A stretch of DNA of 64,000 nucleotides, from positions 233,259 to 297,258 of the IMG/VR virus record IMGVR_UViG_3300023184_000026. One strand, given 5' to 3'. The translations under genes were made by a program, and so were the position numbers. Below the pieces are notes generated by a model that worked only from the letters and a program-made list of their open reading frames with translations, did not search any database and was not told the DNA's origin. Of the stretch, positions 2,645 to 64,000 are shown piece by piece. How positions within the stretch are numbered: the first letter of the stretch is position 1; the number at the start of each line of letters is the position of its first letter.

Positions 2645-3931
2645 ATGCACTACTTTTTATATCCAACTAAAGACGCATACATAAGCAATCTTCCAGCCTA
2701 TATGTATAAAAATACAGGATTGGACGAACTGCTTGAAGTGGAAAAGCGAATATCTACCAACGGATGCTCCAGCGTAGTTCAATATACGGAACTGGTCGGA
2801 TACACGGCATCAAGTTGCGAATTGTTGAGTGGTTCATTTTCGGGATCATTTAATCCGGAGTCAACCAGTTCTGTTGTCATTTCCAGTTCATACGAACCAA
2901 GATACACCAACACAATGAGTTCGGTTGTTTCAAGAGCACTACTTCGTTTTGATTTGGACGATGTTGCAACCGCAATAACAAATAACGAAATAATAAACCC
3001 TAAATTTTACCTCAATCTGAAAATATGTGAGTCCGTTGAAGTTCCAACAAAATACACATTATTTGCTTATCCAATTTCTCAATCTTGGGATATGGGCACC
3101 GGTTATAAATATGACGGATCAACCTCACCGGATGGTGTAAATTGGAAATTCAGTAGAGCGGATCAGATTGAAAAGTGGTGGAGTACAGGATCATTCACGG
3201 ATTGTGGTGGCGGCGGTGTGTGGTGGATAGACAGCAATACCAAAAAATCCGGTTCAGCCATTGACACACATATATATATTTCTGGAAGCTATAGTGCCAA
3301 ACAGGACTTTGATTATCAAACAAGCGATGTTAAAATGGAAGTAACTAGCATGGTGCTTGGGTGGTTAAATGAAGAAATTCAAAATAATGGTTTAATTTTG
3401 ATGCACAGCGATGAATCAAGTTCTGTTGAATATGGAACTTTGAAATTCTTCAGCAAAGAAACAAATACTATATATTCACCATATCTGGATGTTGCGTGGG
3501 ATGACTCTGTTTTAAGTTGGGAGTCACCAGGATTTGATACAGGAAGTGCCAGCCCAATTCAAATTCGAGATGCCGTAGTTGGCATAAAAAACATGGCCAC
3601 GGAATATAAGTTTGGATCAATCATCAGACTGGATGTTAGTCCCAGAAAAAGATATCCTCAAAAGACATTTACGAACAAACTTTCCGATTATTTATCACAG
3701 TACTATCTACCATCATCTAGTTTTTATCAAATAAAGGACGCCGAGAGCGAGGAAAATATATTGCCATATGATAATTTTACTCGTTTGAGCTTTGATTCAA
3801 ATGGAAATTATTTCATGCTAGACACAACTGGTCTACCGTCAGAAAGATACTACAAGGTTCAAATAAGAACAGAGCAAAGCGGGTCTATAATGACATTTGA
3901 TATCCCAACACCATTTAAGATTTCAAGATGA
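2645..3931 (+). CDS. Baseplate-associated structural protein (DNRLRE-like beta domain)
   Basis: YPTKDAYI...SRALLRFDL...QNNGLIL...FFSKE...SPYL pattern resembles DNRLRE-type domains; located in the baseplate operon. Confidence 0.55.
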   Translation: MHYFLYPTKDAYISNLPAYMYKNTGLDELLEVEKRISTNGCSSVVQYTELVGYTASSCELLSGSFSGSFNPESTSSVVISSSYEPRYTNTMSSVVSRALLRFDLDDVATAITNNEIINPKFYLNLKICESVEVPTKYTLFAYPISQSWDMGTGYKYDGSTSPDGVNWKFSRADQIEKWWSTGSFTDCGGGGVWWIDSNTKKSGSAIDTHIYISGSYSAKQDFDYQTSDVKMEVTSMVLGWLNEEIQNNGLILMHSDESSSVEYGTLKFFSKETNTIYSPYLDVAWDDSVLSWESPGFDTGSASPIQIRDAVVGIKNMATEYKFGSIIRLDVSPRKRYPQKTFTNKLSDYLSQYYLPSSSFYQIKDAESEENILPYDNFTRLSFDSNGNYFMLDTTGLPSERYYKVQIRTEQSGSIMTFDIPTPFKISR

Positions 3932-4149
3932 ATCCAAACCCAACTTTGCAAGGATACAATCAAACCGACATAGAAAAAATAACTCGCAGCGGTTCGATCA
4001 TTCCAAATATTGATAGTAGTGGAAATTTGATAATACAGAATGCTCCTGATCAGATATATAGTTCATCTATTACAATAGAGTTGATAAATGCTGTGTATAT
4101 TCCAACTAAAGTAGAAACGAAGATTGATCCTACATTTTACGAATTATAA
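3928..4149 (+). CDS. Small hypothetical protein in baseplate operon
   Basis: 73-aa ORF, 4-nt overlap with the upstream gene and 5-nt gap to the downstream gene. Confidence 0.6.
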   Translation: MNPNPTLQGYNQTDIEKITRSGSIIPNIDSSGNLIIQNAPDQIYSSSITIELINAVYIPTKVETKIDPTFYEL

Positions 4150-4154
4150 GTTAT

Positions 4155-7100
4155 ATGGAAAATTTGAATAATAGTTTGCAATTCATATCATATCCCTCGA
4201 AATCTTTGGGTCATGGATCTACATTGTCTCGGTCGGACATTATTTTTTACACAGAAAATCAAACTTCCAGTAATTTTCCGTTCGGTAAATCGGAAAAAGA
4301 CATCATAAATGTTGGCGTATATGAGCTAAGTGGTGAATTTGTTGCTTCCACAACCATTTATTCCAGTGGTTCTTACACAAAACACACCGCGTCATATTAT
4401 GATTCTTTTAATCAGTATAATCAATACTCATACAAGAAATATAATAGTGATTTTTTCATTGTTGGTAGCGACCAAAAGTCACTGCTATTTGATGTAAGCA
4501 GATGCTTGAATTCTATTGGAGTGCAGGATGGAAACTACAAGCTATATGTTGAATTAAATAGAAATATTGTTGGAAATGAAAAACAAAACGGCGAGAGACT
4601 TATCATCAATACTATTTCTACCGGAAGACAAGAAATAACATTGATACCTCAAACGCTGAGAGGTACCGATTCGGAAATAAATCGAGAATATGATATATTT
4701 TCCAACAGTCGACTTCAATTGAAAGATGTTGTTGAAGAAATATCAACGAATATTTCCAATCCCCAAATATACAACATTTATAATCTAGTGATGGAATCCA
4801 ATCCAAGTGGATCGGCTGCTCTGAAGTATAATTATGGACTCAAAACGGACGTTGACGTAATAAACTTTTTGACCGACATATATTACGGAGTATCAACCGG
4901 AAATTACAAATCAAATAGACAAATTGCCAACAATAATATTCTTGGAATATATAATCAGTTCAATAATTGGATGTATCAGAATTATGAAGCTGGAGTTACA
5001 TTCCAAATTATACAGGATTATTATTACAGTTTGTTTTTGTTTATTGTTGATAGAGAACTCAACAATATCACAAACAAACGTCCAGATAGTTTTCCCCAAA
5101 TTGTTGAATTTTTACAAACTATATTTTACAACGAAATATTTTATCCCGCGATTTATGAGGCAGAACTCAAGCGAAATATAGATTTATCCGGGTATTTTAA
5201 GTATTACTTAAATTTTACAAATGGTCAAAAAATATCGATAATCAATCAAAAATTGATTCCAACTCAAGATCCAAGGTTCTATGATTATTTAGCACTTAAA
5301 ATAATAGATCCATTGCCACAAAATTTTGACTTGGGTGCAGAGGCGTGGATCACATGTGATTTTGGATTCTTGCCAATTGTACAGAATTTATTTTATTTTT
5401 CAAAGACGGAAATTAAAACAATACCGTTGAGAGGACCAAATTTTCTTGTAAAAATAGAAAATGAGGGAAATTCCACGCAAGCTTTGTCGATGGATGAGCT
5501 AATTTCTGTCACCGGAAGTGCATACAATGAATTGGCAAAGAAGATAAGTTCGCGTGAAAACCAACTGATTGATACTACGAATTACAGAAACTTTGAAAAT
5601 TTTGTAAATTTTTCTTCGGCGGATATTAGACTTCAAGCATTTGGTGGTAAAAGAAAGCAAATCGATTCTTTGTATTATGAAATAGACACCGTTAACGCCA
5701 AACTTGTTTCGAATCCAAATGATGCATTTTATTTAAAAGAAAAATCCGATGCAAATTCTCAAATAGATGAGTTGGAGGCTGGAATGGATGGATATGAAAG
5801 ATTTTTGTATGAAAATCCCGGTTGGTATATAAAACATGGAGAGGGAGTTGATGGATACACGTCGGCATCATTCTATGATAAAAATAATGGAGGTTCATTG
5901 ATAAATAATTTGCCACAGTTCATTATAGAGGATGCAAGCAACAATGCCGATTATATAAAGTTTGTGGCCATGGTTGGTCATTTTTTTGATAATATTTCAT
6001 TGACTATAAAACAGTTAACTGAAAAAAATAATTATTCAAGTTCTCCAAATTTTGGAATATCCTTGGATATTGTTGGAGATATGCTTCGTTCACTTGGGTG
6101 GGATGCGGAAATATCAAAAGATAACCTTCCGCTTATTCTGGCGTCATTCTCAAAAAACGATTTTGACCCAGAATCTGAATTTTATTCTCAAGCCAGAAAT
6201 CTTTCCGAAGAACAAAGAAACCAAATAATATGGAAAAGATTATTGAATAGTCTTCCTTTCATATACAAAGCAAAGGGGACGGAAGCATCATTGAATGCAT
6301 TAATTTCATGCTTTGGCGTTCCAAAGAATATCATTAAAATAAAAGAATATGGCGGAATATTAAATACGAGCAATCTTACCGATACTACAGAACATATCGT
6401 GGAAGAAGTAAAATACGAGCCATATTTCAGCGGAAGTTTTGAGTATTTCGTTCTTAATTGGACCGGTAGTGCAAAGACAATTGAATTCAATTTCAGATTT
6501 GATCCAGCAAAAACAAGTGAATCTGGTACGGTTTTTAGATTGGCAAATTGTTCTGATAATTGGGTGGTTGGTGCTGTTCGCGACAGAGGAAATGATTGGG
6601 GGAAATTATTTTTCAGTATAGATGATGGGTATGGAAATGTTAAGACCGCAGTTACATCACGCGCCCCAATATTTGATGGAAATTCTTACCACGCAATGGT
6701 AAAGAGAAACGATGTTGATGTTCATTTCAATGCAACTATAAATTTGGATGAATATCCAACCAGATATGACCTACTTCTTCAAAAATCGGAAGATGATAGA
6801 ATAACTTACAGTGTAACTTCCAGTATGTTCGTGAGTGGAAGTTTCAATAATTCTTTTGGTACTGGTGAGTATCTGTATATAGGAAATTACAATCAAAGTA
6901 CTGCGTCTTTAAATATCGACCCAGAGGCTTTTTTTGGAAATATTGACGATATACGAGTATGGGAAACTCCATTATCGACCGCACGTTTTGAGGCACACAC
7001 ACTTCATAGAAATGCATATGACCTCGAAGATCCTATGGAAATGATTTCTGATAATTTGTATAGAATATCATTTGAGCGACCAGTCGATCTTTATAGTACC

Positions 7101-8885
7101 GAATCATACGCGGTGAACTTGAATAATTTATCATTTAGAAAAGATTTTCCAACATTTGGAGCCGCAAACTTTCCAGAATCTTTTGGTAAATTGGAGAGAT
7201 TGTCATATTGCGACCCATCCGAAGGCCCGTCGTTTCCATATCAGTTTTCTCGCAAGGACGTGCGAATGATAATGAAAATTCCCGATTATGGGTCCAGTAA
7301 ATTCAGAAGTAATAAAATTAATTATGTAGAACAAGAACTTTCCACAAATCTTTCTCCAGATACACGAGCGTCATATATGACGAGTGAACTGATAAGTACA
7401 GATTCAAACAAGCTCGGAATATTTTTCTCTCCGTCGGAAATGCAAAATACGGAAATCATTAAGTTCTTTGGTGAATTTCCATTGGGAGATTTGATTGGAG
7501 ATCCAGCATCCGTTTACAAAAATTCTTACGATAAATTTGAAAGATTTAGACAGATATATTATGACCAAGGATTTGGAAATATTGATTTCACATTCTTCAT
7601 GAATATTGTTCGATTCTATTTTGACAAGGCAATGTTCAAATATATAAAGGGGATAATTCCGGCCAGAGCAAAATTGGTGGACGGTATATTGATTGAACCG
7701 AGCATACTGGAAAGACCAAAGTTACAATTGAAGCCGCTGGTGAAAGAGAACATAGATCAAAAAACTGGCGAAACTTATTCAAAAAGTAAAATTAGCGTTG
7801 TAAAAGATCCGGATAGAGTTGGAATATTGAGACAGGAATACAGAGGAATTGCAACATATTCGGATGTAAATCAAGTATTTTTTCCGGCGGAACAAGATCA
7901 ATATGGTTTTGAAATTTATGGAAATAACGGATTGACATATTATAATGGAAATTATTATAGGGCGGATGTAATACCATACACGAAAAAATATCAAGTGTCG
8001 CAAAAATACGTTGCTCCATATTCTCAATTGAATGAAAACCAGATAGTGAATGATTTTTCGGGAAAAACGGAAACAATCACAAACACTTATTATAAGGTTA
8101 ATATTGCAAAATTGCCGGTTGTGGACAGATATCCAATGACTGCATCGGTTTCTCCAAGAGGCCAAGCTATACCAAAAACATATTTCAGCGGAAGTTTATA
8201 TTTTGATGCCGGTATGCGCGGTTGGCAAGATTATGCTACAACCAATTCTCACAAGCTTATGGGAATAATATCCGGTTCGGTAAATGGATTGGATGTAGTG
8301 CAGTATCCTTACATAGATCCAATATACGGTGCAATTACGAATGGTACGATTGTAAATCCAGGAATTATTATATCGGGAAGTATGTTCCAAAATGGATGTC
8401 CAGTTACATATTCTGGATATTTTGATGTTGATGGTGGTGTTCAATCGTTTGAAGGCTATATATACGGGCATTTCAGTGGAAGTTTTTTTGCTGGGAATTA
8501 TTCAAGTTCAATATATGAACGAACGGTGTATAATATTCAATTTATATCAGAAGCTCCCACATCGTCGATATTTAATATATTTTCCACACATGGTTCGGGC
8601 GATTTATTTGCGCCGCTGGCTTCTGGTCTAAATTATCGCAAGATTTACTCCATGGAATACTATCCAACAAGCTCCAAATTATTGAATGGTTACATGGAAA
8701 CTCATCACAAATATAGCAAATTGCAGTTTTCTCAAAAAGAAATTAACGCATATCAAACAAATCCAATAACCAAAGTCCAAACCAATTATAAATGGAAACG
8801 TAGTAGTCAAAATAAAAAAACTACTGTAGATCCAAAGACTGGATTGACCGACAATACTGATGCGGTTATTGTGAAAACTATATAA
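4155..8885 (+). CDS. Large baseplate/tail protein with P2 tail-I/gp7-like motif and LamG-like domain
   Basis: 1576 aa; IWKRLLNSLPFIYKAKGTEASLNALISCFG (~6230-6315) resembles the tail-I/gp7 KGT motif; TIEFNFRF...LYIGN...FFGNIDDIRVWETPLS (~6480-6980) is LamG/concanavalin-like. Confidence 0.65.
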   Translation: MENLNNSLQFISYPSKSLGHGSTLSRSDIIFYTENQTSSNFPFGKSEKDIINVGVYELSGEFVASTTIYSSGSYTKHTASYYDSFNQYNQYSYKKYNSDFFIVGSDQKSLLFDVSRCLNSIGVQDGNYKLYVELNRNIVGNEKQNGERLIINTISTGRQEITLIPQTLRGTDSEINREYDIFSNSRLQLKDVVEEISTNISNPQIYNIYNLVMESNPSGSAALKYNYGLKTDVDVINFLTDIYYGVSTGNYKSNRQIANNNILGIYNQFNNWMYQNYEAGVTFQIIQDYYYSLFLFIVDRELNNITNKRPDSFPQIVEFLQTIFYNEIFYPAIYEAELKRNIDLSGYFKYYLNFTNGQKISIINQKLIPTQDPRFYDYLALKIIDPLPQNFDLGAEAWITCDFGFLPIVQNLFYFSKTEIKTIPLRGPNFLVKIENEGNSTQALSMDELISVTGSAYNELAKKISSRENQLIDTTNYRNFENFVNFSSADIRLQAFGGKRKQIDSLYYEIDTVNAKLVSNPNDAFYLKEKSDANSQIDELEAGMDGYERFLYENPGWYIKHGEGVDGYTSASFYDKNNGGSLINNLPQFIIEDASNNADYIKFVAMVGHFFDNISLTIKQLTEKNNYSSSPNFGISLDIVGDMLRSLGWDAEISKDNLPLILASFSKNDFDPESEFYSQARNLSEEQRNQIIWKRLLNSLPFIYKAKGTEASLNALISCFGVPKNIIKIKEYGGILNTSNLTDTTEHIVEEVKYEPYFSGSFEYFVLNWTGSAKTIEFNFRFDPAKTSESGTVFRLANCSDNWVVGAVRDRGNDWGKLFFSIDDGYGNVKTAVTSRAPIFDGNSYHAMVKRNDVDVHFNATINLDEYPTRYDLLLQKSEDDRITYSVTSSMFVSGSFNNSFGTGEYLYIGNYNQSTASLNIDPEAFFGNIDDIRVWETPLSTARFEAHTLHRNAYDLEDPMEMISDNLYRISFERPVDLYSTESYAVNLNNLSFRKDFPTFGAANFPESFGKLERLSYCDPSEGPSFPYQFSRKDVRMIMKIPDYGSSKFRSNKINYVEQELSTNLSPDTRASYMTSELISTDSNKLGIFFSPSEMQNTEIIKFFGEFPLGDLIGDPASVYKNSYDKFERFRQIYYDQGFGNIDFTFFMNIVRFYFDKAMFKYIKGIIPARAKLVDGILIEPSILERPKLQLKPLVKENIDQKTGETYSKSKISVVKDPDRVGILRQEYRGIATYSDVNQVFFPAEQDQYGFEIYGNNGLTYYNGNYYRADVIPYTKKYQVSQKYVAPYSQLNENQIVNDFSGKTETITNTYYKVNIAKLPVVDRYPMTASVSPRGQAIPKTYFSGSLYFDAGMRGWQDYATTNSHKLMGIISGSVNGLDVVQYPYIDPIYGAITNGTIVNPGIIISGSMFQNGCPVTYSGYFDVDGGVQSFEGYIYGHFSGSFFAGNYSSSIYERTVYNIQFISEAPTSSIFNIFSTHGSGDLFAPLASGLNYRKIYSMEYYPTSSKLLNGYMETHHKYSKLQFSQKEINAYQTNPITKVQTNYKWKRSSQNKKTTVDPKTGLTDNTDAVIVKTI

Positions 8886-8938: not shown

Positions 8939-9568
8939 ATGGCGTATATCAATAATCAGACAATCACTGTGGATGCGGTTCTCACAAAAAAGGGCAGAGA
9001 ATTGCTGGCGGCAAAAGGCGGTCTTAATATCACATCGTATGCTCTTTCGGATGATGAAATTGATTATAGTTTGTATCAACCAAATCACCCACAGGGATCG
9101 GCATATTATGACCTCGCCGTTCGTAATACTCCGGTGTTTGAAGCATTCACAGATGAAACTCAAGCTTTAAAATATAAGCTAGTAACATTGCCTTCTGGAC
9201 AGACTTCAATCCCAGTTATCAGTCTTGGTCAAAGTTCCATCAACGTTGACAATGATTACAAAGGAGAGGTTGTTGTTGTTCCAAGCACAAATCCAGCGTA
9301 CAACACCACACTTGGATACACTGCAATTTTAGCTAATAAAACCGTTGGCACTATTGTTGGAGAGCAGCTTCAGACCGCAACAACTGCAACAATTCCAACA
9401 TTCATTGGGGATGTTTCGTCCACAACTGCACAAGTAGCACTTGGATTAAGATTTAGATTTGTACCAAATATGTCATTGACCACTACAACTGGAACTACTC
9501 TAACAATCATTGGCAACGAGAGTGGTGGGTCAATTTCGATCCCAGTCACTGTTAACGTAAGAAATTAA
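8939..9568 (+). CDS. Virion structural protein (baseplate/tail)
   Basis: 209 aa, Thr/Val-rich; N-terminal DAVLTKKGRELLA...ITSYALSDDEIDY; late-type motif upstream. Confidence 0.6.
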   Translation: MAYINNQTITVDAVLTKKGRELLAAKGGLNITSYALSDDEIDYSLYQPNHPQGSAYYDLAVRNTPVFEAFTDETQALKYKLVTLPSGQTSIPVISLGQSSINVDNDYKGEVVVVPSTNPAYNTTLGYTAILANKTVGTIVGEQLQTATTATIPTFIGDVSSTTAQVALGLRFRFVPNMSLTTTTGTTLTIIGNESGGSISIPVTVNVRN

Positions 9569-9578
9569 TTAAAATCAT

Positions 9579-10688
9579 ATGATCTTCAAGCAATTTGATC
9601 AAACGGACATAGTGGCGGGAAGATCCCAGCCAGTGTCCACCGGAATGTGGAGCGACGGCGAAACGAACTGGTCTCAGTTTTATACCAGCAGTATTCAAAC
9701 GACGCAGTCATCATCGCTGTATGAACCGTTAAATGGACTGTATTATACCAACGTTTATGATTATCCAGTAGCGTCCGCCAGTTCCGACGTATATTTTTCG
9801 ATTACGTATGGTCACTCCGCAGGATCGGGTTCTTCAACATTCGACAAAAACGCGTCACAGGGAAGTTTGATATATCCAACAAAGGCAATATACAATCAAT
9901 ACCGAAATTTACTGTTGGCACCCGGTGATTCTAAATTTACATTTGTTAAATCGGATAATAACGGAAACCAGACACAGATTGATTCTGATGATATTTACGC
10001 AATTTCATTTAGAGGCACAAAATACAAAGATCGTTTAGATCCCGGCCAATTTGAATTTACACTAAGTGGGTCCAGTGGAGCAAATGGAAAAATTACACTG
10101 ATAGATGATTCCAGAATTAATCCGGAAACTGGTGTGCAGACTGGTGGAAAGCGTTATAATCTTATACGAGGTTCGATTGAAAGCGGATCTTTGTCCACGA
10201 CAAAAAATTACGAAGCAATTGGATCTATATACCCAGACTTGGGAATAATCATATTGAACCCGACAGTTCTTCAGTCGTTGGTTGGAAATGTTGGTGGAAT
10301 ATCCTTGAACGATTATACTTCAAACTATTGGGGTGATGGATTTGCACGAATGCAGAATGTTCTCTTCGCATCTATAAAACAGGGTGCGGCTGCGTTGCCA
10401 ATGAAAGCGAGAGTAACTGAATATGTTCCCGCTCGTCATTATTTTGTGAGAGTAAAGAACCAAGAGTATAATTACAGCAACAATCCAACATTTATTATAT
10501 CTGACAAATCTAGTTCGGAGTATGGTAAATTGAGATTCACCGATTTTTATACCAATCCAAAAGTATATGTAACCTCGGTTGGTCTATATAATGAAACAAA
10601 CGACTTGGTTGCTGTTGCAAAACTGAGTCAGCCGTTATTAAAAGACTTTACCAACGAGTGTCTTATAAAAATTAAGATAGATGTTTAA
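9579..10688 (+). CDS. Virion structural protein, paralog of 10819-14181
   Basis: C-terminal EYNYSNNPT...VTSVGLYNETNDLVAVAKLSQP matches EFNYSTNPT...ITTVGLYDGNELVAVGKLGRP of the next gene; similar N-termini (MIFKQF/MIKQF). Confidence 0.6.
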   Translation: MIFKQFDQTDIVAGRSQPVSTGMWSDGETNWSQFYTSSIQTTQSSSLYEPLNGLYYTNVYDYPVASASSDVYFSITYGHSAGSGSSTFDKNASQGSLIYPTKAIYNQYRNLLLAPGDSKFTFVKSDNNGNQTQIDSDDIYAISFRGTKYKDRLDPGQFEFTLSGSSGANGKITLIDDSRINPETGVQTGGKRYNLIRGSIESGSLSTTKNYEAIGSIYPDLGIIILNPTVLQSLVGNVGGISLNDYTSNYWGDGFARMQNVLFASIKQGAAALPMKARVTEYVPARHYFVRVKNQEYNYSNNPTFIISDKSSSEYGKLRFTDFYTNPKVYVTSVGLYNETNDLVAVAKLSQPLLKDFTNECLIKIKIDV

Positions 10689-10805
10689 CTAATAAAAGTT
10701 AAATTTTACATTGTTTAAGTAGTGTGTTTTGGGATGGGTTATAAAGAAATGTTGTCAATTGTAAAAACTCGCTCTATCGGCAAGTGAATACTCAAACATT
10801 GATTA

Positions 10806-10813
10806 TATTTATC
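10806..10813 (+). promoter_or_regulatory. TATTTATC variant of the putative late motif
   Basis: 5 nt before ATG 10819. Confidence 0.45.
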
Positions 10814-10818
10814 TATAT

Positions 10819-22256: not shown

Positions 22257-22264
22257 TATTTATA
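22257..22264 (+). promoter_or_regulatory. TATTTATA putative late-promoter motif
   Basis: 13 nt before ATG 22278. Confidence 0.55.
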
Positions 22265-48852: not shown

Positions 48853-48906
48853 GTCAAAATATTTTGATGTTTGAGATTTATGATTGATATATATAGATAT
48901 AATTCT

Positions 48907-49659: not shown

Positions 49660-49684
49660 CCGTATATATAATATATATTGTACC

Positions 49685-50479: not shown

Positions 50480-50480
50480 T

Positions 50481-51152: not shown

Positions 51153-51214
51153 TAAGCCAGCCGGTTATTATCCTTCTATAATAAATATTGCGGCACAAAC
51201 ACACAGCATCTACA

Positions 51215-51222
51215 TATTTATA
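51215..51222 (+). promoter_or_regulatory. TATTTATA putative late-promoter motif
   Basis: 4 nt before ATG 51227. Confidence 0.55.
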
Positions 51223-51226
51223 TAAT

Positions 51227-54641: not shown

Positions 54642-57600
54642 TTCAAAACGCATTTATAGCTTCAAATGGCTTGATTGTAAATGGAAATGCCGAAATTAAC
54701 GGAGATTTGACCGTGAGCGGCTTTGCATATGCTTCATCAAGTTATGCTATCACAGCATCATATGCACTAAATTTTTCAGGAACTAGCGGCATAAATGGTA
54801 CTGATGGAACTTCCGGAACGAGCGGTCAAAATGGTACAAGTGGTACAGGTGGAAATTCTGGCACAGATGGCACGTCCGGATCAAGTGGAGAATCTGGCAC
54901 CAGTGGAACAAACGGCTTGTCGGGAACAAGTGGTACGAGTGGAGAAAGTGGTACCAGTGGAACAACTGGCACAAGCGGAACGAGTGGAGCGACTGGCTCA
55001 TCTGGTCAATCTGGTAGCGATGGTACCAGTGGTACAAGTGGTACGAGTGGGGTAAGCGGGGCGACTGGTTCTTCTGGCACGAGTGGTACTGATGGCACGA
55101 GCGGCTCTTCTGGTTCTACAGGAATAAGTGGCACAAGCGGAACGAGCGGAGCGACTGGCTCATCTGGTCAATCTGGTAGCGATGGTACCAGTGGTACGAG
55201 TGGTACAAACGGTGCCAGTGGCACGAGCGGAATAAATGGTACATCCGGTTCTTCCGGAACAAGCGGAACGAGTGGAGAAACAGGTACAAGTGGTACAAGT
55301 GGCGCTACTGGTTCTTCTGGCACGAGTGGCACGGATGGCATTAGCGGTACAACGGGTGCAAGTGGCACATCAGGTTCAAGTGGCACCAGCGGTGCAACAG
55401 GCTCAAGTGGCACAAGCGGTGCAACTGGCGCATCAGGTTCAAGTGGCACAAGCGGTGCAACTGGCGCATCAGGTTCAAGTGGCACAAGCGGTGCAACTGG
55501 CGCATCAGGTTCAAGTGGCACCAGCGGTGTAACGGGTGCAAGTGGCACATCGGGTTCAAGTGGCACCAGCGGTGCAACTGGCGCATCAGGTTCAAGTGGC
55601 ACCAGCGGCACATCAGGTTCAAGTGGCACCAGCGGCACATCAGGCTCAAGTGGCACCAGCGGTGCAACTGGCGCATCAGGTTCAAGTGGCACCAGCGGTG
55701 TAACGGGTGCAAGTGGCACATCAGGTTCAAGTGGCACCAGCGGCACATCAGGTTCAAGTGGCACCAGCGGTGCATCGGGTTCAAGTGGCACCAGCGGCAC
55801 ATCAGGTTCAAGTGGCACCAGCGGTGCGGGAACCATTTCTGGCGGCACAGCAAATTATGTTGCAAGATTTACTGGCGCAACAACACTAACTACTGGTTCA
55901 ATATTTGACAATGCAACAAATGTGGGAATTGGAAAAGCAACGCCAAACGCAAATCTTGATGTATATGGTGATACAATAATTACAGGTAGTTTATCAGTGA
56001 CTGGTAACATTACTAATATAGGTAATGTCAGTGCAAACAGCATAACGGTTGCTGGGCAACCAACAACTTATGGTACAGTAAATCCTGATTATATTAACGC
56101 AGGTAGAATAACTTCCGACCAAACCGGTGCAGGTTCAGGTAGTGATATTATATTTAATTATGCACCTGTAAGTAGTGGTATATCTCTTAACACATCAACG
56201 GGTGTATTCACATTAACCGCAGGTAAAACATACAGTTTATTTGCAGAATTAAGTTTCAGCAATTTTAGTGATACAGCAAATGGTTATGAAATATACGATT
56301 GGGTAGATGCAACAACAAATACTAGATTAGTCACAACTGGTATAGGTGCTGGTATAGGTGAGAATATCAATAGAAATACAAATGAATTTAATGCAACATC
56401 TACTACTTTAATTTATACCCCAACTACAAACCAAACTGTAAAAGTTCGTATTGTAGAGGCGGCGGGAACAGTAACTGTCAGAGCAGGTATTGGAACAAAA
56501 GCAATTATTCAACAAATAAATCCCGTCATAGCGGTTCAAGCAACTGCTACTGGTACGGTTAGCACGAACTATGCAAAATACACAAGGTCTGCACAACAAA
56601 CTGGGTTATCAAATGGATCGGTTGTTGTTTGCAATGTAATAGAAAATACAGGTGGATCAGCAATATCAGTCAATACAGGAAGTGGTCAAGTTACATTGGC
56701 CGCTGGTAAAACTTATAGATTAAAAGGAATGATTCCCGGTTTCACTACTAGCGGTGCGAACGTAAGACCACAGTTCTGTTGGTATAATGAAACTACATTA
56801 ACATATATAGGTTCGTCTGCCGAATCGTACAGTCCGAGCGATGCTGTTGGATACGGAGCATTTGGCGGCGCAGCTGAAGCAATTATTACCACAGCTGCAA
56901 CAACCGTGACATCGTTTAGATTATTAGCAGGTGCGACCAATTTAGCAGGTATAGGCGGTAATACCGATTTTTCTACTACAGGAAGTTATCCGTGGATTGA
57001 CATACAAGAAATAGGAGCAACCTTCGCACTCAACGCACTTGACACAATGACTCTAACCGGCGCTGTTTCAGCCAGCGGTAATGTAACCGGACAAAACTTA
57101 ATATCATCAAACGCAAGTGGTAATGAAGGTGGAGAAATACAACTTGCTAAATCTCCAAATAGTACCTTATCTGGAAGTAATGTTGTCATTGATCAATACA
57201 TTGATAGAATTAGATTTTTTGAAAGCGGCGGTAGCTCAAGAGGTGCATATATTGATCTATCAACAGCACCGGCGGGGGTAGGTTTTTTAATTAATAATAG
57301 AGCAAGTGGCATTGTTGATGCCGGTACAGACGTTACATTAGGAAATTTGAAAGTAAGATTATCAACATCGGGAAATAGAAGTTTGCAAGTATCAACTGTT
57401 TCAGGAACATATTCAGTTTATGGCAGTAGTGTATATAGTACGGGAGGTCCAGGCGGTACATCAATAACAGACAATGCGCCATTAACAATTACAACCACGC
57501 CCACATATATTAATGCGGCATATAGTTTTGGTCTGGGAGGATATACTGATACTTGGTTGCTTATGTCCACGGCCAGTAACATTGCTTGGAGAATAACATT

Positions 57601-57655
57601 GATAGTTGGTAGTAGTTACAACAACAATATGATATGTATTGAAAGATTGGTATAA
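54638..57655 (+). CDS. Fibre protein with a proline-free Gly-X-Y collagen-like stalk and Thr/Gly-rich head domains
   Basis: SASYA-type leader, ~116 G-X-Y triplets, then two related beta domains (VFTLTAGKTYSL / QVTLAAGKTYRL). Confidence 0.8.
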   Translation: MIQNAFIASNGLIVNGNAEINGDLTVSGFAYASSSYAITASYALNFSGTSGINGTDGTSGTSGQNGTSGTGGNSGTDGTSGSSGESGTSGTNGLSGTSGTSGESGTSGTTGTSGTSGATGSSGQSGSDGTSGTSGTSGVSGATGSSGTSGTDGTSGSSGSTGISGTSGTSGATGSSGQSGSDGTSGTSGTNGASGTSGINGTSGSSGTSGTSGETGTSGTSGATGSSGTSGTDGISGTTGASGTSGSSGTSGATGSSGTSGATGASGSSGTSGATGASGSSGTSGATGASGSSGTSGVTGASGTSGSSGTSGATGASGSSGTSGTSGSSGTSGTSGSSGTSGATGASGSSGTSGVTGASGTSGSSGTSGTSGSSGTSGASGSSGTSGTSGSSGTSGAGTISGGTANYVARFTGATTLTTGSIFDNATNVGIGKATPNANLDVYGDTIITGSLSVTGNITNIGNVSANSITVAGQPTTYGTVNPDYINAGRITSDQTGAGSGSDIIFNYAPVSSGISLNTSTGVFTLTAGKTYSLFAELSFSNFSDTANGYEIYDWVDATTNTRLVTTGIGAGIGENINRNTNEFNATSTTLIYTPTTNQTVKVRIVEAAGTVTVRAGIGTKAIIQQINPVIAVQATATGTVSTNYAKYTRSAQQTGLSNGSVVVCNVIENTGGSAISVNTGSGQVTLAAGKTYRLKGMIPGFTTSGANVRPQFCWYNETTLTYIGSSAESYSPSDAVGYGAFGGAAEAIITTAATTVTSFRLLAGATNLAGIGGNTDFSTTGSYPWIDIQEIGATFALNALDTMTLTGAVSASGNVTGQNLISSNASGNEGGEIQLAKSPNSTLSGSNVVIDQYIDRIRFFESGGSSRGAYIDLSTAPAGVGFLINNRASGIVDAGTDVTLGNLKVRLSTSGNRSLQVSTVSGTYSVYGSSVYSTGGPGGTSITDNAPLTITTTPTYINAAYSFGLGGYTDTWLLMSTASNIAWRITLIVGSSYNNNMICIERLV
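54779..55825 (+). repeat. Coding 9-nt-period repeat (GTS/GSS/GAT/GAS) with 27- and 36-bp higher-order units
   Basis: 1044 nt between the first Gly (54779) and Gly 55823; near-identical TCAGGTTCAAGTGGCAC(C/A)AGCGG units from ~55370 to 55825. Confidence 0.95.
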
Positions 57656-57791: not shown

Positions 57792-60155
57792 ATGCCTACT
57801 TCACTTCCAACAAAAATGTCCATGTTTGAGAATGCAGTTTCACTCTCAACTTCGAGTTATATAATAGGATTGGATATGTATGGTGGGCAACTATCCAACG
57901 TAAAAGTTTCTGCATCAATTGCTGGATATGAACTTTCAAGAAAAAGATGGATACTTAATCCACCGGTAACATCATCAAACGATGTTCGCGGAGATGATGG
58001 TGCGGAATCGTATAATAGTGGTCAATATTGGATAAAATCTGGCAGTGTTTGGTTGGAGCTTGTTGTGACTGGTTCGAACAGTAGCGGCACAATTTCAAGC
58101 AGTTATCAGCTGTCAGATGGTGGTGGAGAAGAATTTGGAGCGGGAAATAATGTAACTTTTGGTAGAGCAAATATTGGTGCCATAACTGGCTCAAAAATCA
58201 ACATTGTAGCACAGGCAAATATCGGCACTAGTATATTAGATGAACATTTTGTTACTGGCAGCTTGAACGTTTCTGGTTCGTTGAGAACCACTGGAACAGC
58301 AACCATACGAGCAAAAACATATATAAAATTTGACGCTGCTGCCGACGGAATATATTTCATAAGTGGCAGCGGTTTTACTCAGGCTGCGTCCATAATCTTG
58401 GCAAATTCAAGAGTAAACTTCAGTTCCACTGCGGGTACTACGCCAAATGGTTTCACGTTCAATACAGGTACTGTTAGCAATGCAGTTTTGGTACGAGACA
58501 ACGGTTCGTTGAATGTTTTTGGTAGCGGAAGTTTTGGTAAAACTACATCAAATGCGGTATTGGATGTTAATGGAAATACAATAGTAACAGGGTCATTGAC
58601 TGTGACTACCGGAAGTATTGTAATAACCGGTTCTTCTGTATATCCTTTGGATATAACATCTACAACCGGTAACGCTAATTTTAGAGTCATAGACACCAAT
58701 AACTCAACTGCGTTTGGATATTTTACAAATGGATTTGGTACTGGAAGAGTTGGCGTGGGTAATCTGAGTATGTTTGTCGGTGGGCAAGCTGGTATGTCAA
58801 CGATAATACAAGCTGGCAACATCATTTCCATGATAATCAATACATCTGGCAGCGTTGTCATTGGAAACGCGGCATCAAGTGCAAGATTGAACATAAGCGG
58901 AAGTGCTGTTGTTACGGGTTCAATATACATAAATAACGGAACATTAATTGGAACTGCGTCATATGCATTAAATGCAAAATCAAATAATGTATATAATGTT
59001 AAAGATTATGGAGCCGTTGGAGATGGAACAACTAATGACACGACCGCAATACAAACTGCAATTAACGCAGTCAAAGTTGCTGGCTTTGGAACAGTATATT
59101 TTCCGGATGGTACATTTGTAATAACCGGTTCATTGACCATTCCATCAAATCCACAATGTGATATTTCTTTGGAAGGTGAAGGTTCAAACATATCTATTAT
59201 CAAACAAACATCAAATGCAAATGCAATTTACTTTGATATGAATGATGGTAGTGGTTGGGCGAATGATTATCAAGTAGCAATAAAGAGTCTTGCATTCAAA
59301 ACTTCTGGACAAGCCAGCACAGCAATACATGTTACATATGGCACTTTACAGTACTCACAGCACTCAAATATATCAGTTGATATAAATGATGTTCATATCT
59401 ATTCCGATGGTTCAAATTATTGGAACAATGGAATTGTTCTTGAGTCGGCATGGAATTTTAGAATTTCAAACACGATGGTGATTGGAAAAACGGGATCGTC
59501 TCCATATAATGGCACAGGGTTGGAAATACGCAGAATGTGCGTAAATGGATCAATTAATCAATCGCAGTTCAATTTTTGGAAAACTGGAATATTTGTAAAT
59601 ACTGTAGATTATACATCAGCTGGAATGAACACAGAAGGATTGTTCCTTGATCAAATATATATGGTGCCTGTTAATTATGGGGTGTATGTAAAAGGCAATA
59701 AAACATTCTACAATGCTCCATTTAATTCAAATGATTGGGCGGGCAGACCAATTGCTGGAAGAATGGTGTTGTTTTCGTTCAATGACAGTCACATCGATTC
59801 GCGAGATTCTGGTAATGCACTGTTGCTTGAAAACGTACAAAGCCATTATATATCAAATAATCTTATGATATCAGATGGTACTGGTTCCGTGGTTTATGGT
59901 TCAAATGCATATGAAGGAACATTTACCGGAAATACATTATTTAATGCAGGCAGTGCGCCGTCAATTTATATTGGTGGATACAGCGGATCTGCTAATATAG
60001 TAACAGGAAATGTATTTCGCGGAGGATCTACACATGTATTACTTGAATCAAGTTCAATATACAATAAAGTGTATGGAAATATTGCATATGATGCTCTTAA
60101 TATTTCCGTGACCAATGCTGGTTCAAATAATTTGGTTGGAAGTGTAGGCAACTAA
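57792..60155 (+). CDS. Tail fibre/tailspike with pectate-lyase-like beta-helix (putative depolymerase)
   Basis: VYNVKDYGAVGDGTTNDTTAIQTAI..TVYFPDGTF (~58990) followed by right-handed beta-helix-like repeats. Confidence 0.8.
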   Translation: MPTSLPTKMSMFENAVSLSTSSYIIGLDMYGGQLSNVKVSASIAGYELSRKRWILNPPVTSSNDVRGDDGAESYNSGQYWIKSGSVWLELVVTGSNSSGTISSSYQLSDGGGEEFGAGNNVTFGRANIGAITGSKINIVAQANIGTSILDEHFVTGSLNVSGSLRTTGTATIRAKTYIKFDAAADGIYFISGSGFTQAASIILANSRVNFSSTAGTTPNGFTFNTGTVSNAVLVRDNGSLNVFGSGSFGKTTSNAVLDVNGNTIVTGSLTVTTGSIVITGSSVYPLDITSTTGNANFRVIDTNNSTAFGYFTNGFGTGRVGVGNLSMFVGGQAGMSTIIQAGNIISMIINTSGSVVIGNAASSARLNISGSAVVTGSIYINNGTLIGTASYALNAKSNNVYNVKDYGAVGDGTTNDTTAIQTAINAVKVAGFGTVYFPDGTFVITGSLTIPSNPQCDISLEGEGSNISIIKQTSNANAIYFDMNDGSGWANDYQVAIKSLAFKTSGQASTAIHVTYGTLQYSQHSNISVDINDVHIYSDGSNYWNNGIVLESAWNFRISNTMVIGKTGSSPYNGTGLEIRRMCVNGSINQSQFNFWKTGIFVNTVDYTSAGMNTEGLFLDQIYMVPVNYGVYVKGNKTFYNAPFNSNDWAGRPIAGRMVLFSFNDSHIDSRDSGNALLLENVQSHYISNNLMISDGTGSVVYGSNAYEGTFTGNTLFNAGSAPSIYIGGYSGSANIVTGNVFRGGSTHVLLESSSIYNKVYGNIAYDALNISVTNAGSNNLVGSVGN

Positions 60156-60890: not shown

Positions 60891-63104
60891 ATGAGCATTA
60901 ATCCAAAAGATATTTATTTTACACAGAGAAATGCAGCAAATACTGCATTTACCGAAGTGTATGTCAGTGGAAGTAATTTATTAATACAGACCAATGCTGA
61001 TGGTATAATAACCGGTTCTAACGTATTACCGGCCAACATAAGCGCAGTCAGTGCTTCATATGCTCTCACGGCATCGTATGTTTTGGGTGGATCAATTTCT
61101 GGATCTATTGATTCGGCATCATATGCAGTAAGTGCGTCGTATTCTGCGTATGCACTAACTGCGTCGTATGTTTTGGGTGGATCAATTTCCGGTTCTGTTG
61201 ATTCGGCTTCATATGCGTTAAGTGCATCGTATGCATCAACTGCATCAAAAGCCGAGTCGTTGATTGCTGGAATAAATATAAATGTTGGCCAAATAACTGC
61301 GTCTTCAATATTGGTTGATAAATTGACCGTAAATATTGTCACCAGCAGCATTGCATATATAACTGGCAGTACAATTTTTGGAAGTAGTCTTTCTGATACT
61401 CATCGATTCACAGGCAGTGTGTCAATCACTGGATCAATTTCATTTGCGGGTTTGCTTGAGGGAGATGGTAGTAAATTGCGCAATGTTGGTGAAATTGATA
61501 AAATATTTTATGTGGCAGAAGATGGCAGCGATTCCAACGATGGAAAAACATTAAATACTCCATTCAGAACAATCAAACACGCATCTATTGTAGTGTCTTC
61601 GTCAATTGTGCTATATGGAACTGGGTCGGCTCCTTGGAGAAGCACAATCAGAATACAAAGCGGATATTATATTGAAGAGGCTCCGGTAATTATTCCACAA
61701 TGGACTTCTATTGTTGGAAATGATCTTAGAACAACAGTTATTCGCCCAACCGCCGGTACAAAAACTGAAAATATGTTTTTGATGAATAACGGAACATACG
61801 CATATAATCTGCGCTTTGAAGGTTCAACAATTGACAATCTTGAAGATCCGCGCAAAGGATTTTTCTTTGCATTTCAACCCGGAGCATTCATAACAACATC
61901 CCCGTATATTCAAAACTGCTCTTGTATCAACACTCCGTTTGATAAGTTTTATGTACCATTAAGTCCAAATTCAAGTCCTCCAAATTATCTAGTTGGAAAT
62001 GGTCCAGGTGGCATGATCGTGGATGACAGCGTACTAGATCCATATAGTCCATTGAAATCAATGATTGTTGACGCATACACACAAGTTGCGTTCAATGGTA
62101 TTGGATTGTGTGTTCGCGGCAGAGGTTATGCACAACAAGTTTCGTTCTTCACAAATTTTAGCAGAGTAGGTATATTTGCCATGGATGGCGGTCATGCTTC
62201 TTTGCTGAACTCCAATACAACATTTGGTGATTATGGATTAAGAGCATCTGGTTCTCGTATAATAATTGTACCTAATATAAATCCTATAAGCTCTTCTGTG
62301 GACGCTTCTGCATCTGTTCTTCTTTTGTCAAATGCGTCGGCCATTCAAGATTATATGATGGACCAGCTTAAAATTCATGGCTGGTATAGTTCATCATATC
62401 TTATACCAACATCATCGGCATATCTTTCTACAATTAAAGACAGCAGTATTCTTATATCATCTCTTGCATCAGACTTGCTTGTTGAAAAAGCTGCTTTAAC
62501 ATCTACATTCCTTCAAGGACAATTTAAAGGACAAGATATATCGGGCGACAAAAGATATACGCTTCCCACGGCATCTGCTGACTTTAGAAAAGGTGCTATA
62601 GCTGCCTTTAGAGTCAACGATGGCAAAAAGATGGCAATGGACTATACATCATCATATCTGTATATAAAGGAATATATCAACAGTGATCCAGATATACTTT
62701 TTGCAACCATGACTTCTCAAGCCAAGGATAAAGTAAATCAAATGCTTGATCTTGCCATTGATGTTATAAGAAGCGTTGCTATTGATGTTGAGCCTACATA
62801 TCTACAAGAATTTGGTTCACTTATTACAGCAACTTCTCAAGATCTTTCATACGCAGGATCTGGAGTCAATTTTCTTGGATTGCCTGTGAATCAGGGCGGC
62901 ATAGGTCAAACAAACTATGATATTCGCATATATGAAGAAGCAGGTGGAAGAGTATATCATACAGCAGGAGATGAAACAGGAGACTTTTTTGCTGGTACGG
63001 ATTTTGTAATAAGACAAGCAACTGGTACAATAGAAGGCAGAACATTTGATAAAGCGATGGCCGCGAGAATTGTTCCATTAAATTTAGCGTTGGAGAGCGT
63101 TTAA
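60891..63104 (+). CDS. Fibre/spike protein with SASYA repeats and beta-helix domain
   Basis: Repeated [ST]ASY[AV]; IFYVAEDGSDSNDGKTLNTPFRTIKHA (DUF1565-like start of a beta-helix). Confidence 0.7.
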   Translation: MSINPKDIYFTQRNAANTAFTEVYVSGSNLLIQTNADGIITGSNVLPANISAVSASYALTASYVLGGSISGSIDSASYAVSASYSAYALTASYVLGGSISGSVDSASYALSASYASTASKAESLIAGININVGQITASSILVDKLTVNIVTSSIAYITGSTIFGSSLSDTHRFTGSVSITGSISFAGLLEGDGSKLRNVGEIDKIFYVAEDGSDSNDGKTLNTPFRTIKHASIVVSSSIVLYGTGSAPWRSTIRIQSGYYIEEAPVIIPQWTSIVGNDLRTTVIRPTAGTKTENMFLMNNGTYAYNLRFEGSTIDNLEDPRKGFFFAFQPGAFITTSPYIQNCSCINTPFDKFYVPLSPNSSPPNYLVGNGPGGMIVDDSVLDPYSPLKSMIVDAYTQVAFNGIGLCVRGRGYAQQVSFFTNFSRVGIFAMDGGHASLLNSNTTFGDYGLRASGSRIIIVPNINPISSSVDASASVLLLSNASAIQDYMMDQLKIHGWYSSSYLIPTSSAYLSTIKDSSILISSLASDLLVEKAALTSTFLQGQFKGQDISGDKRYTLPTASADFRKGAIAAFRVNDGKKMAMDYTSSYLYIKEYINSDPDILFATMTSQAKDKVNQMLDLAIDVIRSVAIDVEPTYLQEFGSLITATSQDLSYAGSGVNFLGLPVNQGGIGQTNYDIRIYEEAGGRVYHTAGDETGDFFAGTDFVIRQATGTIEGRTFDKAMAARIVPLNLALESV
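61059..61238 (+). repeat. Imperfect 90-bp tandem duplication (YALTASYVLGGSISGS[IV]DSASYA[VL]SASY)
   Basis: Units start at 61059 and 61149; mostly synonymous differences. Confidence 0.85.
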
Positions 63105-63108
63105 AGTA

Positions 63109-63116
63109 TATTTATA
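63109..63116 (+). promoter_or_regulatory. TATTTATA putative late-promoter motif
   Basis: 6 nt before ATG 63123. Confidence 0.55.
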
Positions 63117-63122
63117 TAAACC

Positions 63123-63479
63123 ATGCCTACAAATCCTATACCACTTAATAAATTTCGTTTGATTGCAAAAACATTAGATAGCGGAAGCAATCTTATATAC
63201 AGAGAAAATCTGGAAGTTGCTTCTATTTTACTTTCAGCACAAATTACTAATACAACGTCCAGTATCATGAGCACAGATGTGAAAATATTAAAGAGTGGCT
63301 CATTGTCAGATAGTGATGCTATTGCATTATTAAAAGATGCAAAAATTCCACCGGGTGATTCACTAAATCCAATATCTGGAAAAATAGTTCTTGAAAAATA
63401 CGATGCTTTTATAATTACATCTACTGAATCAGGATCATTACAAGTAATATTATCTATATTAGAAAACGCAATTAATTAA
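63123..63479 (+). CDS. Small beta-rich virion protein
   Basis: 118 aa; ILLSAQITN..IPPGDSL..IVLEKYD..LQVILSILE; TATTTATA 6 nt upstream. Confidence 0.6.
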   Translation: MPTNPIPLNKFRLIAKTLDSGSNLIYRENLEVASILLSAQITNTTSSIMSTDVKILKSGSLSDSDAIALLKDAKIPPGDSLNPISGKIVLEKYDAFIITSTESGSLQVILSILENAIN

Positions 63480-63499
63480 CCTCATAGTATCCATACACA

Positions 63500-64000
63500 A
63501 TGTCCAAACTAGTAGGCAGACAACCAATAGAAGTAAAGTTAATTGACAAGGTACATGGATATGTACCAATATATGACAGCGCGTCTGGATATTGGACAAC
63601 AACCGACCTTTATGCTGCTATAACAAGCAGTGTGTCTTCCACCGCAAGTTTTGCAATCAGTGCTTCATATGCACTTACAGCAAGTTATGCATTGAGTTTT
63701 AGCGGAACAAGTGGAACATCTGGTACAAGTGGAACATCCGGTGCCAATGGATCGTCTGGCACAAGTGGAACCAGTGGCACAAGTGGTTCAAGCGGCACAG
63801 CGGGAACAAGTGGCTCTTCTGGTACATCAGGCACGTCTGGTATAGACGGCACAAGCGGTTCAAGTGGAACCAGTGGCACAAGTGGTTCAAGCGGCACAGC
63901 GGGAACAAGTGGCTCTTCTGGTACATCAGGCACGTCTGGTATAGACGGCACAAGCGGTTCAAGTGGAACCAGTGGCACAAGTGGTTCAAGCGGCACAGCG
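63500..64000 (+). CDS. Second Gly-Thr-Ser collagen-like fibre protein (5' part; runs off the window; absent from the ORF track)
   Basis: ATG 63500 MSKLVGRQ..ISASYALTASYALSFSGTSGTSG..; frame stays open to the window end; G-X-Y starts at 63704. Confidence 0.85.
   Translation, partial: MSKLVGRQPIEVKLIDKVHGYVPIYDSASGYWTTTDLYAAITSSVSSTASFAISASYALTASYALSFSGTSGTSGTSGTSGANGSSGTSGTSGTSGSSGTAGTSGSSGTSGTSGIDGTSGSSGTSGTSGSSGTAGTSGSSGTSGTSGIDGTSGSSGTSGTSGSSGTA
63764..64000 (+). repeat. Perfect 99-bp tandem repeat (33 codons)
   Basis: Identical units start at 63764, 63863 and 63962. Confidence 0.92.

Follow-up and report, generated by a model that had tools for sequence, protein, structure and literature searches.

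The window analysed here is a stretch of 64,000 nucleotides from a large aquatic phage (IMG/VR record IMGVR_UViG_3300023184_000026, positions 233,259 to 297,258), and the baseplate, head, fibre and sugar-island genes described below lie on its (+) strand. It begins with the gp25-like (226-636) and gp6-like (633-2588) inner baseplate genes, followed by genes for baseplate-peripheral proteins of 428, 73 and 1,576 aa (2645-8885), which are syntenic with Mel-JY01 and immuto, and, after 8939-9568, by genes for a 369-aa protein and a 1,120-aa FG-GAP beta-propeller protein (9579-14181). The head and tail genes further downstream comprise the major capsid protein (47180-48793); the neck and adaptor-like proteins 51188-52444 and 53325-54641, with an HNH endonuclease gene between them; a collagen-like fibre with 117 Gly-X-Y triplets, in which X is mostly T/S/A and Y mostly S (54638-57655); a tailspike with a pectate-lyase-type beta-helix (57792-60155); a 737-aa fibre and a 118-aa protein (60891-63479); and the start of a second collagen-like fibre gene, which runs off the end of the window (63500-64000).

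A sugar-modification island is also present. Pfam and NCBIfam searches identified a 644-aa GT4 glycosyltransferase fused to an FkbM-family methyltransferase (26928-28862); a half-length DegT/PseC-like aminotransferase (28869-29498), 75% identical to immuto 56735-57379, and a hexapeptide-repeat sugar acetyltransferase (29495-30052); a CmcI-like methyltransferase (30842-32149) and a GT2 glycosyltransferase (32146-33909); and a 706-aa fusion protein (34005-36125), whose N-terminal part is a GT4-type glycosyltransferase domain (about residues 160-255) and whose C-terminal part (residues 335-705) is a TibC/Aah-family (BAHT) O-heptosyltransferase domain. For protein 22254-26198, a PDB search found nothing and family scans gave only nucleotidyltransferase hits below all curated cutoffs; no heptose-nucleotide pathway gene was identified in the window.

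Enrichment of the motif in outer virion proteins

The tripeptide [ST]GS is concentrated in the outward-facing proteins of the particle. The outer set, assigned by annotation and synteny, consists of 14 baseplate, neck, fibre and capsid proteins, about 7,700 aa after removal of the Gly-X-Y run of 54638-57655, and holds 82 sites (SGS 48, TGS 34) against 13.4 expected from each protein's own composition (6.1x). The inner set of enzymes and internal head proteins holds 6 sites in 12,538 aa against 6.1 expected (1.0x). The raw density ratio is about 22-fold, thus confirming the roughly 20-fold enrichment claimed in the initial annotation. Proteins 10819-14181 and 57792-60155 each carry exactly 17 sites, whereas the gp25-like and gp6-like proteins and 8939-9568 carry none.

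The enrichment was tested against several composition-matched nulls. In 2,000 within-protein shuffles, P<=0.0005 was obtained for 2645-3931 (7 vs 0.8 expected), 4155-8885 (10 vs 1.5), 10819-14181 (17 vs 1.9), 57792-60155 (17 vs 2.6), 60891-63104 (9 vs 1.7) and 63123-63479 (3 vs 0.16). The 73-aa protein within 2645-8885 has 1 site against 0.05 expected, the 369-aa protein 3 against 0.7, the capsid protein 3 against 0.7, and the neck and adaptor-like proteins 51188-52444 and 53325-54641 have 4 against 0.3 and 2 against 0.4; a further 6 lie in the C-terminal part of 54638-57655. The three capsid sites (residues 167, 219 and 243 of 537) are all in the segment not covered by the conserved capsid profile. 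Among all 8,000 tripeptides, SGS (6.3x; P 1e-22) and TGS (P 8e-16) are the two most over-represented in the outer set, while SGT is 1.05x, SGG 0.8x, SGA 0.9x, AGS 1.5x and NGS 0.8x. A first-order Markov null that conditions on the observed [ST]G and GS dipeptides still gives 82 vs 40.3 (P 5e-9). It is true that the outer proteins are richer in S, T and G than the inner ones, and that one pair of sites in 60891-63104 lies in a duplicated 19-residue segment; however, the sequence contexts of the sites are otherwise diverse, and an artefact of composition, low-complexity sequence or recent internal duplication is rejected by every null applied. Serine codons at the sites mix AGY and TCN, so this is not a DNA-level motif and selection acts on the protein. 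Inside the Gly-X-Y run there is no excess once the repeat frame is respected (24 vs 21.2), and the initial annotation was right to exclude it.

The motif is better written as [S/T]-[G/A/S]-S. Enrichment by middle residue is 6.1x for G, 3.0x for A and 2.4x for S, and every other residue is <=1.4x; the third position accepts only Ser and the first only Ser or Thr. The preceding residue is most often I or V, and hydrophobic residues are enriched and charged residues depleted at positions -3..-1 and +3..+5. In the AlphaFold model of the tailspike, all 4 sites of the confident beta-helix lie in inter-strand loops, although the N-terminal half, with the other 13 sites, was modelled at low confidence (pLDDT below 50 for much of residues 1-400). 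In the propeller model, 14 of 18 confident sites start in coil against a 45% background (P 0.005); in the two models together, 18 of 22 confident sites do so (P 5e-4). This matches the strand-loop-strand acceptor described for Aah (PMC3835316).

The motif occurs in unrelated folds, namely an FG-GAP propeller, a pectate-lyase beta-helix, the capsid protein, neck proteins and unknown baseplate proteins. For 10819-14181, which has 34 generalised [ST][GAS]S sites, 89 full-length phage homologues show 6.9x, but 19 distant FG-GAP proteins show 1.2x. Similarly, close tailspike homologues show 5-9x, while distant proteins of the same fold are near 1.4x. Orthologue alignments at first suggested rapid turnover of sites; however, in the 10819-14181 family, 15 alignment columns keep [ST][GAS]S in at least 80% of 88 sequences while the middle residue toggles G/S/A, and both hydroxyl positions are therefore under selection.

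The TibC-type enzyme and its genomic neighbourhood

Protein 34005-36125 belongs, by sequence, to the TibC/Aah family. It scores 352.9 bits against the NCBIfam equivalog TIGR04414 (cutoff 200), over model positions 7-374 of 374, and Pfam gives Glycos_transf_1 together with TibC_1st and Glyco_transf_9, the last two just above their cutoffs. The TibC crystal-structure sequences 4RB4 and 4RAP match at E 1e-74 over residues 351-704. The query has Asp where wild-type TibC (4RAP) has the catalytic D110 and the D110A crystal form (4RB4) has Ala, and the four Cys of the TibC iron finger (C339, C342, C358 and C370) all align with Cys; the D110A mutant is inactive, and the roles of these residues are taken from PMC4358343. 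The beta-hairpin thumb aligns without gaps, but the tip residues F265 and V266, which form the dodecamer contact in TibC, are G588 and K589 in the query. The neighbours of the gene are the GT2 gene and the terminase, and no autotransporter domain appeared in any Pfam scan of window proteins.

In IMG/VR, at least 129 viral stretches encode the enzyme. In 18 of 34 non-redundant clusters, a collagen-like and/or [ST]G[ST]-enriched large ORF lies within 3.5 kb, often 57-120 bp downstream, and those checked are tail fibres with Collagen and Peptidase_S74 domains. In one of these loci, L086, the orthologues of 60891-63104 and 63123-63479 lie directly downstream of the TibC-like gene. Homologues of the GT4-FkbM protein (26928-28862) lie beside the TibC-like gene in most of the 34 representative viral loci and in the distant TibC-positive phage LR756501, making it the usual partner of this gene. 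In LR756501, however, the neighbouring proteins are collagen-like but not [ST]GS-enriched.

Distribution in related phages

Megablast of both halves of the window against the phage collection found nothing, and relatives were found by protein search. The motif is present in Microcystis phage Mel-JY01, which has the TibC type. Flavobacterium phage immuto and Rhodothermus phage RM378 have no TibC homologue, yet show comparable enrichment, about 4.7x and 5.5x in their baseplate/fibre clusters, with SGS and TGS among the top tripeptides. The motif therefore appears to be a clade-wide trait that was not seeded for this phage's own island, contrary to the inference of the initial annotation. Nevertheless, immuto and RM378 carry other glycosyltransferases, as does every clade member examined, so that no truly island-less relative was found for comparison. 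LR756508, the closest relative without a TibC hit, was uninformative, because the 89 kb around its capsid gene holds head and neck genes but no fibres.

The motif is not generic. T4 baseplate, fibre and sheath regions give 15 vs 17.4 expected, and no other x-G-x tripeptide takes its place there. Pelagiphage HTVC008M, which shows no island in the 95 kb examined, gives TGS 1.06x, with only mild S-G-small enrichment (about 2x) in its fibre proteins. In 780 non-structural proteins of immuto-like contigs, SGS is 0.84x and TGS 0.28x.

Discussion

Considering the strength and specificity of the motif, its loop context, its concentration in outer proteins of unrelated folds and the presence of a TibC-family enzyme, we propose that [S/T]-[G/A/S]-S, lying in the loop after a beta-strand, may be an acceptor site for O-glycosylation of the outward-facing virion proteins. 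The proteins would be modified in the host cytoplasm, before or during assembly, by phage-encoded transferases. In this phage the most likely first enzyme is the TibC/Aah-type transferase of 34005-36125; the fused GT4 domain, the GT4-FkbM protein, the GT2, the methyltransferases and the amino-sugar acetylation genes would then extend or decorate the sugar. Related phages without the TibC-type enzyme would use another transferase on the same motif. This proposal is plausible but unproven, and we hold it tentatively, as there is no direct evidence that any site is modified. Known TibC/Aah enzymes have no sequence consensus; TibC was found to modify Ser but not Thr, and the mapped TibA sites, NS*GG and TS*AA, are not [ST]GS, while SGG is not enriched here. 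The TibC-type dodecamer ring is built to take a beta-helix, and it is doubtful, by inference from PMC4358343, whether it could act on capsid or large baseplate proteins. The island could instead act on DNA or on host surface glycans.

The main alternative is that the motif is a purely structural loop element, the preferred way in this clade of ending a beta-strand and starting a tight turn in exposed beta-rich virion proteins, inherited and re-invented within the lineage without being modified; the sugar island would then serve something else, or only the collagen-like fibres. The equal enrichment in relatives without a TibC homologue is in line with this, as is the mild enrichment in HTVC008M. 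Many sites are strongly conserved in position across homologues of 42-99% identity, which is equally expected for a structural element, and several are exact two- or three-residue hairpin turns (residues 167 and 545 of 10819-14181 and residue 445 of 57792-60155). However, the residue specificity is far sharper than normal turn propensities, the same folds outside the clade and T4 do not show the enrichment, and the motif appears in unrelated folds at once. We consider this explanation less likely than glycosylation, but it remains possible.

It is also possible, although unlikely, that the motif is a recognition site for a different enzyme shared across the clade, or for a non-glycan modification or an assembly factor, and that the TibC-type enzyme is an accessory whose real substrates are the Ser/Thr-rich collagen-like fibres encoded next to it in many phages. 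Indeed, a GT4 protein is conserved in immuto (49172-50614), RM378 (9165-10619) and Mel-JY01 (83441-84932, split into two ORFs); 13 of the 34 TibC-type clusters, plus LR756501, have a collagen-like neighbour; and the window itself encodes two collagen-like fibres whose Y position is mostly Ser. On the other hand, the GT4 could not be shown in the window's own 297-kb genome, which was not among the best 80 hits; in RM378 the GT4 gene lies next to a DNA polymerase gene, so it may act on DNA; and TibC-adjacent fibres are also enriched in [ST]GS outside their collagen parts (168 vs 54.3 expected).

Virion glycosylation is documented for only a few phages, and no short O-linked acceptor motif has been described for any in the papers searched, nor did we find a prior description of phage-encoded autotransporter heptosyltransferases. 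If the motif is a sequon, glycosylated surfaces could be predicted from sequence across many environmental phages, which bears on adsorption, particle stability, grazing and immune recognition, and the TibC/Aah family would be extended from a handful of bacterial adhesins to at least 129 viral loci, with tail fibres and collagen-like fibres as new substrates. Three relatives are in culture (immuto, Mel-JY01 and RM378). More speculatively, a whole clade of large aquatic myoviruses may write a sequence-defined O-glycan code on its outer surface, read by phage-borne TibC-type and other transferases; phages would then be a major natural home of an enzyme family known so far only from autotransporter adhesins of pathogenic bacteria. 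If the motif is only structural, it is still an unusually sharp, lineage-specific loop signature that marks exposed virion proteins in unannotated genomes.

The closest known systems are TibC-TibA and Aah-AIDA-I of E. coli. The enzyme domain is about 45% identical by eye over some 350 residues, and the E. coli system, like the one proposed here, is cytoplasmic and puts many sugars on Ser residues of beta-rich surface proteins. In many viral contigs the enzyme gene sits directly upstream of a large surface-fibre gene, which mirrors the tibC-tibA and aah-aidA operons (PMC3835316). However, no autotransporter was found here, and the candidate substrates are phage virion proteins of several folds; the enzyme is fused to a GT4 domain and travels with a GT4-FkbM protein; the thumb-tip residues used for the dodecamer contact are not conserved; and the putative acceptor is a sharp tripeptide in which Thr is allowed at the first position, whereas the E. 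coli enzymes have no sequence consensus. In mycobacteriophages, phage-encoded glycosyltransferases decorate structural proteins of the virion, with a proposed role in surface shielding (Freeman et al. 2023, as cited in PMC12619734). There the glycans sit at the C-termini of the capsid and tail-tube subunits and the enzymes are not of the TibC family; here the capsid sites are not at the C-terminus, and the candidate sites are dispersed loop motifs in baseplate, fibre, neck and capsid proteins.

Gene content of the window

All real genes in the window lie on the + strand, apart from one lysozyme-like gene. The window opens with gp25-like and gp6-like baseplate genes and six large unknown proteins, followed by a RuvC-like resolvase, a primase and an SbcCD fusion, a 16-kb block of sugar-related genes, then terminase, portal, prohead protease and major capsid protein, two homing endonucleases and neck proteins, and finally a collagen-like fibre, a tailspike and further fibres. 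A second collagen-like fibre gene starts at 63500 (63500-64000, +) and runs off the end of the window; the minus-strand ORF at 63685-63996 with PLVPLE-type repeats is its shadow and not a gene. In the SbcCD protein (16784-19990), SbcD-like and SbcC-like parts are fused into 1,068 aa, and Microcystis phage Mel-JY01 has the same fusion at 38% identity. The late module is peppered with mobile endonucleases: a GIY-YIG homing endonuclease (48871-49659) and a nuclease (49685-50479) follow the capsid gene, and an HNH endonuclease (52448-52855) lies between the neck genes.

No nucleotide-level match was found in the phage collection. By capsid protein, the nearest relatives are Mel-JY01 (58.6% identity), the metagenomic phage LR756508 (57%), Flavobacterium phage vB_FspM_immuto (55%) and Rhodothermus phage RM378 (38%). 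The window is identical to the terminal 64 kb (positions 233,259-297,258) of the 297,258-bp contig IMGVR_UViG_3300023184_000026; the phage is therefore jumbo-sized, although its nearest cultured relatives are 130-190 kb.

Enrichment of [ST]GS in the outer proteins

The initial annotation had claimed that [S/T]-G-S is strongly enriched in outer virion proteins, and this observation is confirmed. The FG-GAP beta-propeller protein 10819-14181 and the tailspike 57792-60155 each contain 17 [ST]GS, whereas gp25, gp6 and 8939-9568 contain none. With the Gly-X-Y run masked, the outer proteins (about 7,700 aa) hold 82 sites against 13.4 expected from their own composition (6.1x), while the inner proteins (12,538 aa) hold 6 against 6.1 expected (1.0x). 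The only clear outlier among the proteins classed as non-structural is a small 188-aa protein of unknown function between the resolvase and the primase (15129-15695), with 2 [ST]GS against 0.07 expected.

Within-protein shuffles give P<=0.0005 for six of the outer proteins. In a scan of all 8,000 tripeptides, SGS (48 vs 7.6, P 1e-22) and TGS (34 vs 5.7, P 8e-16) are the top two, and near neighbours are flat: SGT 1.05x, SGG 0.8x, SGA 0.9x, AGS 1.5x and NGS 0.8x. Conditioning on the observed dipeptides still leaves a two-fold excess, 82 vs 40.3 (P 5e-9). Ser codons at the sites mix AGY and TCN; thus, the signal is in the protein and not the DNA. Inside the collagen-like run, the count matches the in-frame expectation, 24 vs 21.2.

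The motif is sharper and slightly wider than the initial annotation described. When each position was varied in turn, the first position accepted S (6.3x) and T (5.9x); other residues were not consistently enriched there, and the highest apparent ratios (H 3.6x, C 2.9x) rest on 1-2 counts. The middle position accepted G (6.1x), A (3.0x) and S (2.4x), with all others at <=1.4x, and the third position accepted S only, with T at 1.3x and others up to 1.7x. Residues -3 to -1 and +3 to +5 are 45-57% hydrophobic against a 34% background, and charged residues are depleted there. The picture is strand, then [S/T]-small-S, then strand.

Distribution across folds and phages

The motif is not tied to one fold, and it is not generic to phage fibres. 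The motif-rich proteins include an FG-GAP beta-propeller, a pectate-lyase-type beta-helix, a gp15-like neck protein, the capsid protein and several proteins with no family match. Among 89 full-length homologues of 10819-14181 (42-99% identity), 1,089 [ST]GS were observed vs 157 expected (6.9x), with [ST]GT at 1.06x, but 19 distant FG-GAP proteins show only 1.2x. Close homologues of the tailspike show 5-9x each, and distant members of the tailspike fold about 1.4x. The T4 baseplate, fibre, sheath and head regions give 15 vs 17.4 expected. Pelagiphage HTVC008M gives SGS 2.3x, SGT 2.0x, SGA 2.6x and TGS 1.06x, and therefore shows only a mild, unspecific S-G-small excess. In 780 non-structural proteins of immuto-like contigs, SGS is at 0.84x and TGS at 0.28x. 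Indeed, TGS is under-represented relative to composition both in these proteins (12 vs 42.7) and in T4 (2 vs 8.0), which makes its six-fold excess in the outer proteins more striking.

The enrichment is a trait of the clade. In Mel-JY01, immuto and RM378, SGS and TGS are again among the most enriched tripeptides, and the signal is concentrated in baseplate, fibre and sheath proteins and absent from portal, terminase and tape-measure proteins. Although orthologue alignments at first suggested that sites turn over quickly, the 88-sequence alignment of the 10819-14181 family does not bear this out. Each protein carries about 25.6 generalised sites, 15 alignment columns keep [ST][GAS]S in at least 80% of sequences, and in those columns the middle residue switches among G, S and A. 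Both hydroxyl positions are therefore under purifying selection.

Location of the sites in predicted structures

The AlphaFold model of the tailspike is confident only for the C-terminal beta-helix. All four sites there fall in inter-strand loops, and residues 445-447 form the whole three-residue loop between two strands. The model of 10819-14181 has a mean pLDDT of 73; of its 18 confident generalised sites, 14 begin in coil against a 45% background (P 0.005). They typically occupy the first residues after a strand, and residues 167 and 545 are two-residue hairpin turns.

A TibC-type transferase and the possible role of the motif

The 706-aa protein at 34005-36125 carries a genuine TibC-type transferase domain. 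Its residues 351-704 align with E. coli TibC (PDB 4RB4 and 4RAP) at E 1e-74, and the NCBIfam equivalog model for the "autotransporter strand-loop-strand O-heptosyltransferase" scores 352.9 bits against a cutoff of 200. The catalytic Asp110 and the four iron-finger cysteines named in the TibC structure paper (PMC4358343) are all conserved; the thumb-tip residues are not. Around this gene lie a GT4-FkbM fusion, a half-length DegT-like aminotransferase, a hexapeptide acetyltransferase, a CmcI-like methyltransferase and a GT2. We infer that this is the gene set expected for a small, methylated, amino-sugar-containing glycan. The DegT/PseC-like protein (28869-29498) is only half the usual length (209 aa), yet it is 75% identical to immuto 56735-57379 and 78-79% identical to ORFs in two of the loci compared (L037 and L084), far above the 55% identity of the capsid proteins; either it has been exchanged recently or it is under strong constraint as a half-size protein. 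The 1,314-aa protein at 22254-26198 has weak RNA-ligase-like and nucleotidyltransferase-like regions and no PDB relative. It lies at the start of the sugar block, so it could make a sugar nucleotide or act in NAD metabolism.

The initial annotation had inferred that the phage seeded its exposed surface with acceptor sites for its own transferases, and this interpretation is partly supported. We tentatively propose that the motif is an O-glycosylation acceptor on exposed virion proteins, with the TibC-type enzyme as the likely first transferase of this phage, although nothing in the present data shows that any site is modified. The main rival, which we consider somewhat less likely, is an unmodified, lineage-specific loop element. 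Immuto and RM378 have no TibC homologue by tblastn or phmmer, yet they are as enriched as the window. However, neither relative is free of glycosyltransferases, and we found no island-less relative against which the proposal could be tested. Immuto has a separate island with five glycosyltransferases plus amino-sugar genes, and RM378 has a GT4 and a UDP-galactopyranose mutase. A GT4 family is shared by immuto, RM378 and Mel-JY01; in Mel-JY01 (83441-84932; 34441-35932 of locus L002) the gene is split into two adjacent ORFs, which could be a frameshift, a sequencing error or a real split. In addition, the characterised enzymes have no sequence consensus, and the mapped TibA sites (NS*GG and TS*AA) are not [ST]GS. 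In the literature that could be searched, we found no earlier description of phage TibC-type enzymes or of this motif.

Genomic neighbourhood of TibC-type genes in viral contigs

A scan of IMG/VR found at least 129 viral stretches encoding the TibC-type domain, and the 80 loci kept fall into 34 clusters at 85% identity. In 18 clusters, a collagen-like and/or [ST]G[ST]-enriched ORF of more than 300 aa lies within 3.5 kb, often 57-120 bp downstream, and those examined are tail fibres with Collagen and Peptidase_S74 domains. In one viral locus (L086), the neighbour is the 61%-identical orthologue of the window fibre 60891-63104. The GT4-FkbM partner accompanies the enzyme in most clusters and in the 735-kb phage LR756501. 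Giant collagen-like proteins also lie next to TibC-type genes in viral contigs (L091:11426-20779, L056:5418-12425 and L037:11677-20841), the largest being 3,117 aa with 2,547 residues in Gly-X-Y repeats. Tail-fibre proteins of 2,255-2,341 aa near TibC-type genes (L046:338-7363 and L061:176-6943) give weak matches to Hint/intein splicing domains, with all scores below the curated cutoffs.

Outside their collagen parts, the neighbouring fibres show [ST]GS at 3.1x and [ST]AS at 2.6x. A few carry [ST]GT instead (L081:328-6771, 23 vs 8.0; L041-L043:11167-13326, 7 vs 1.4), which could reflect a variant acceptor preference. The arrangement of enzyme and fibre genes recalls tibC-tibA and aah-aidA, where the transferase gene sits in an operon with its substrate.
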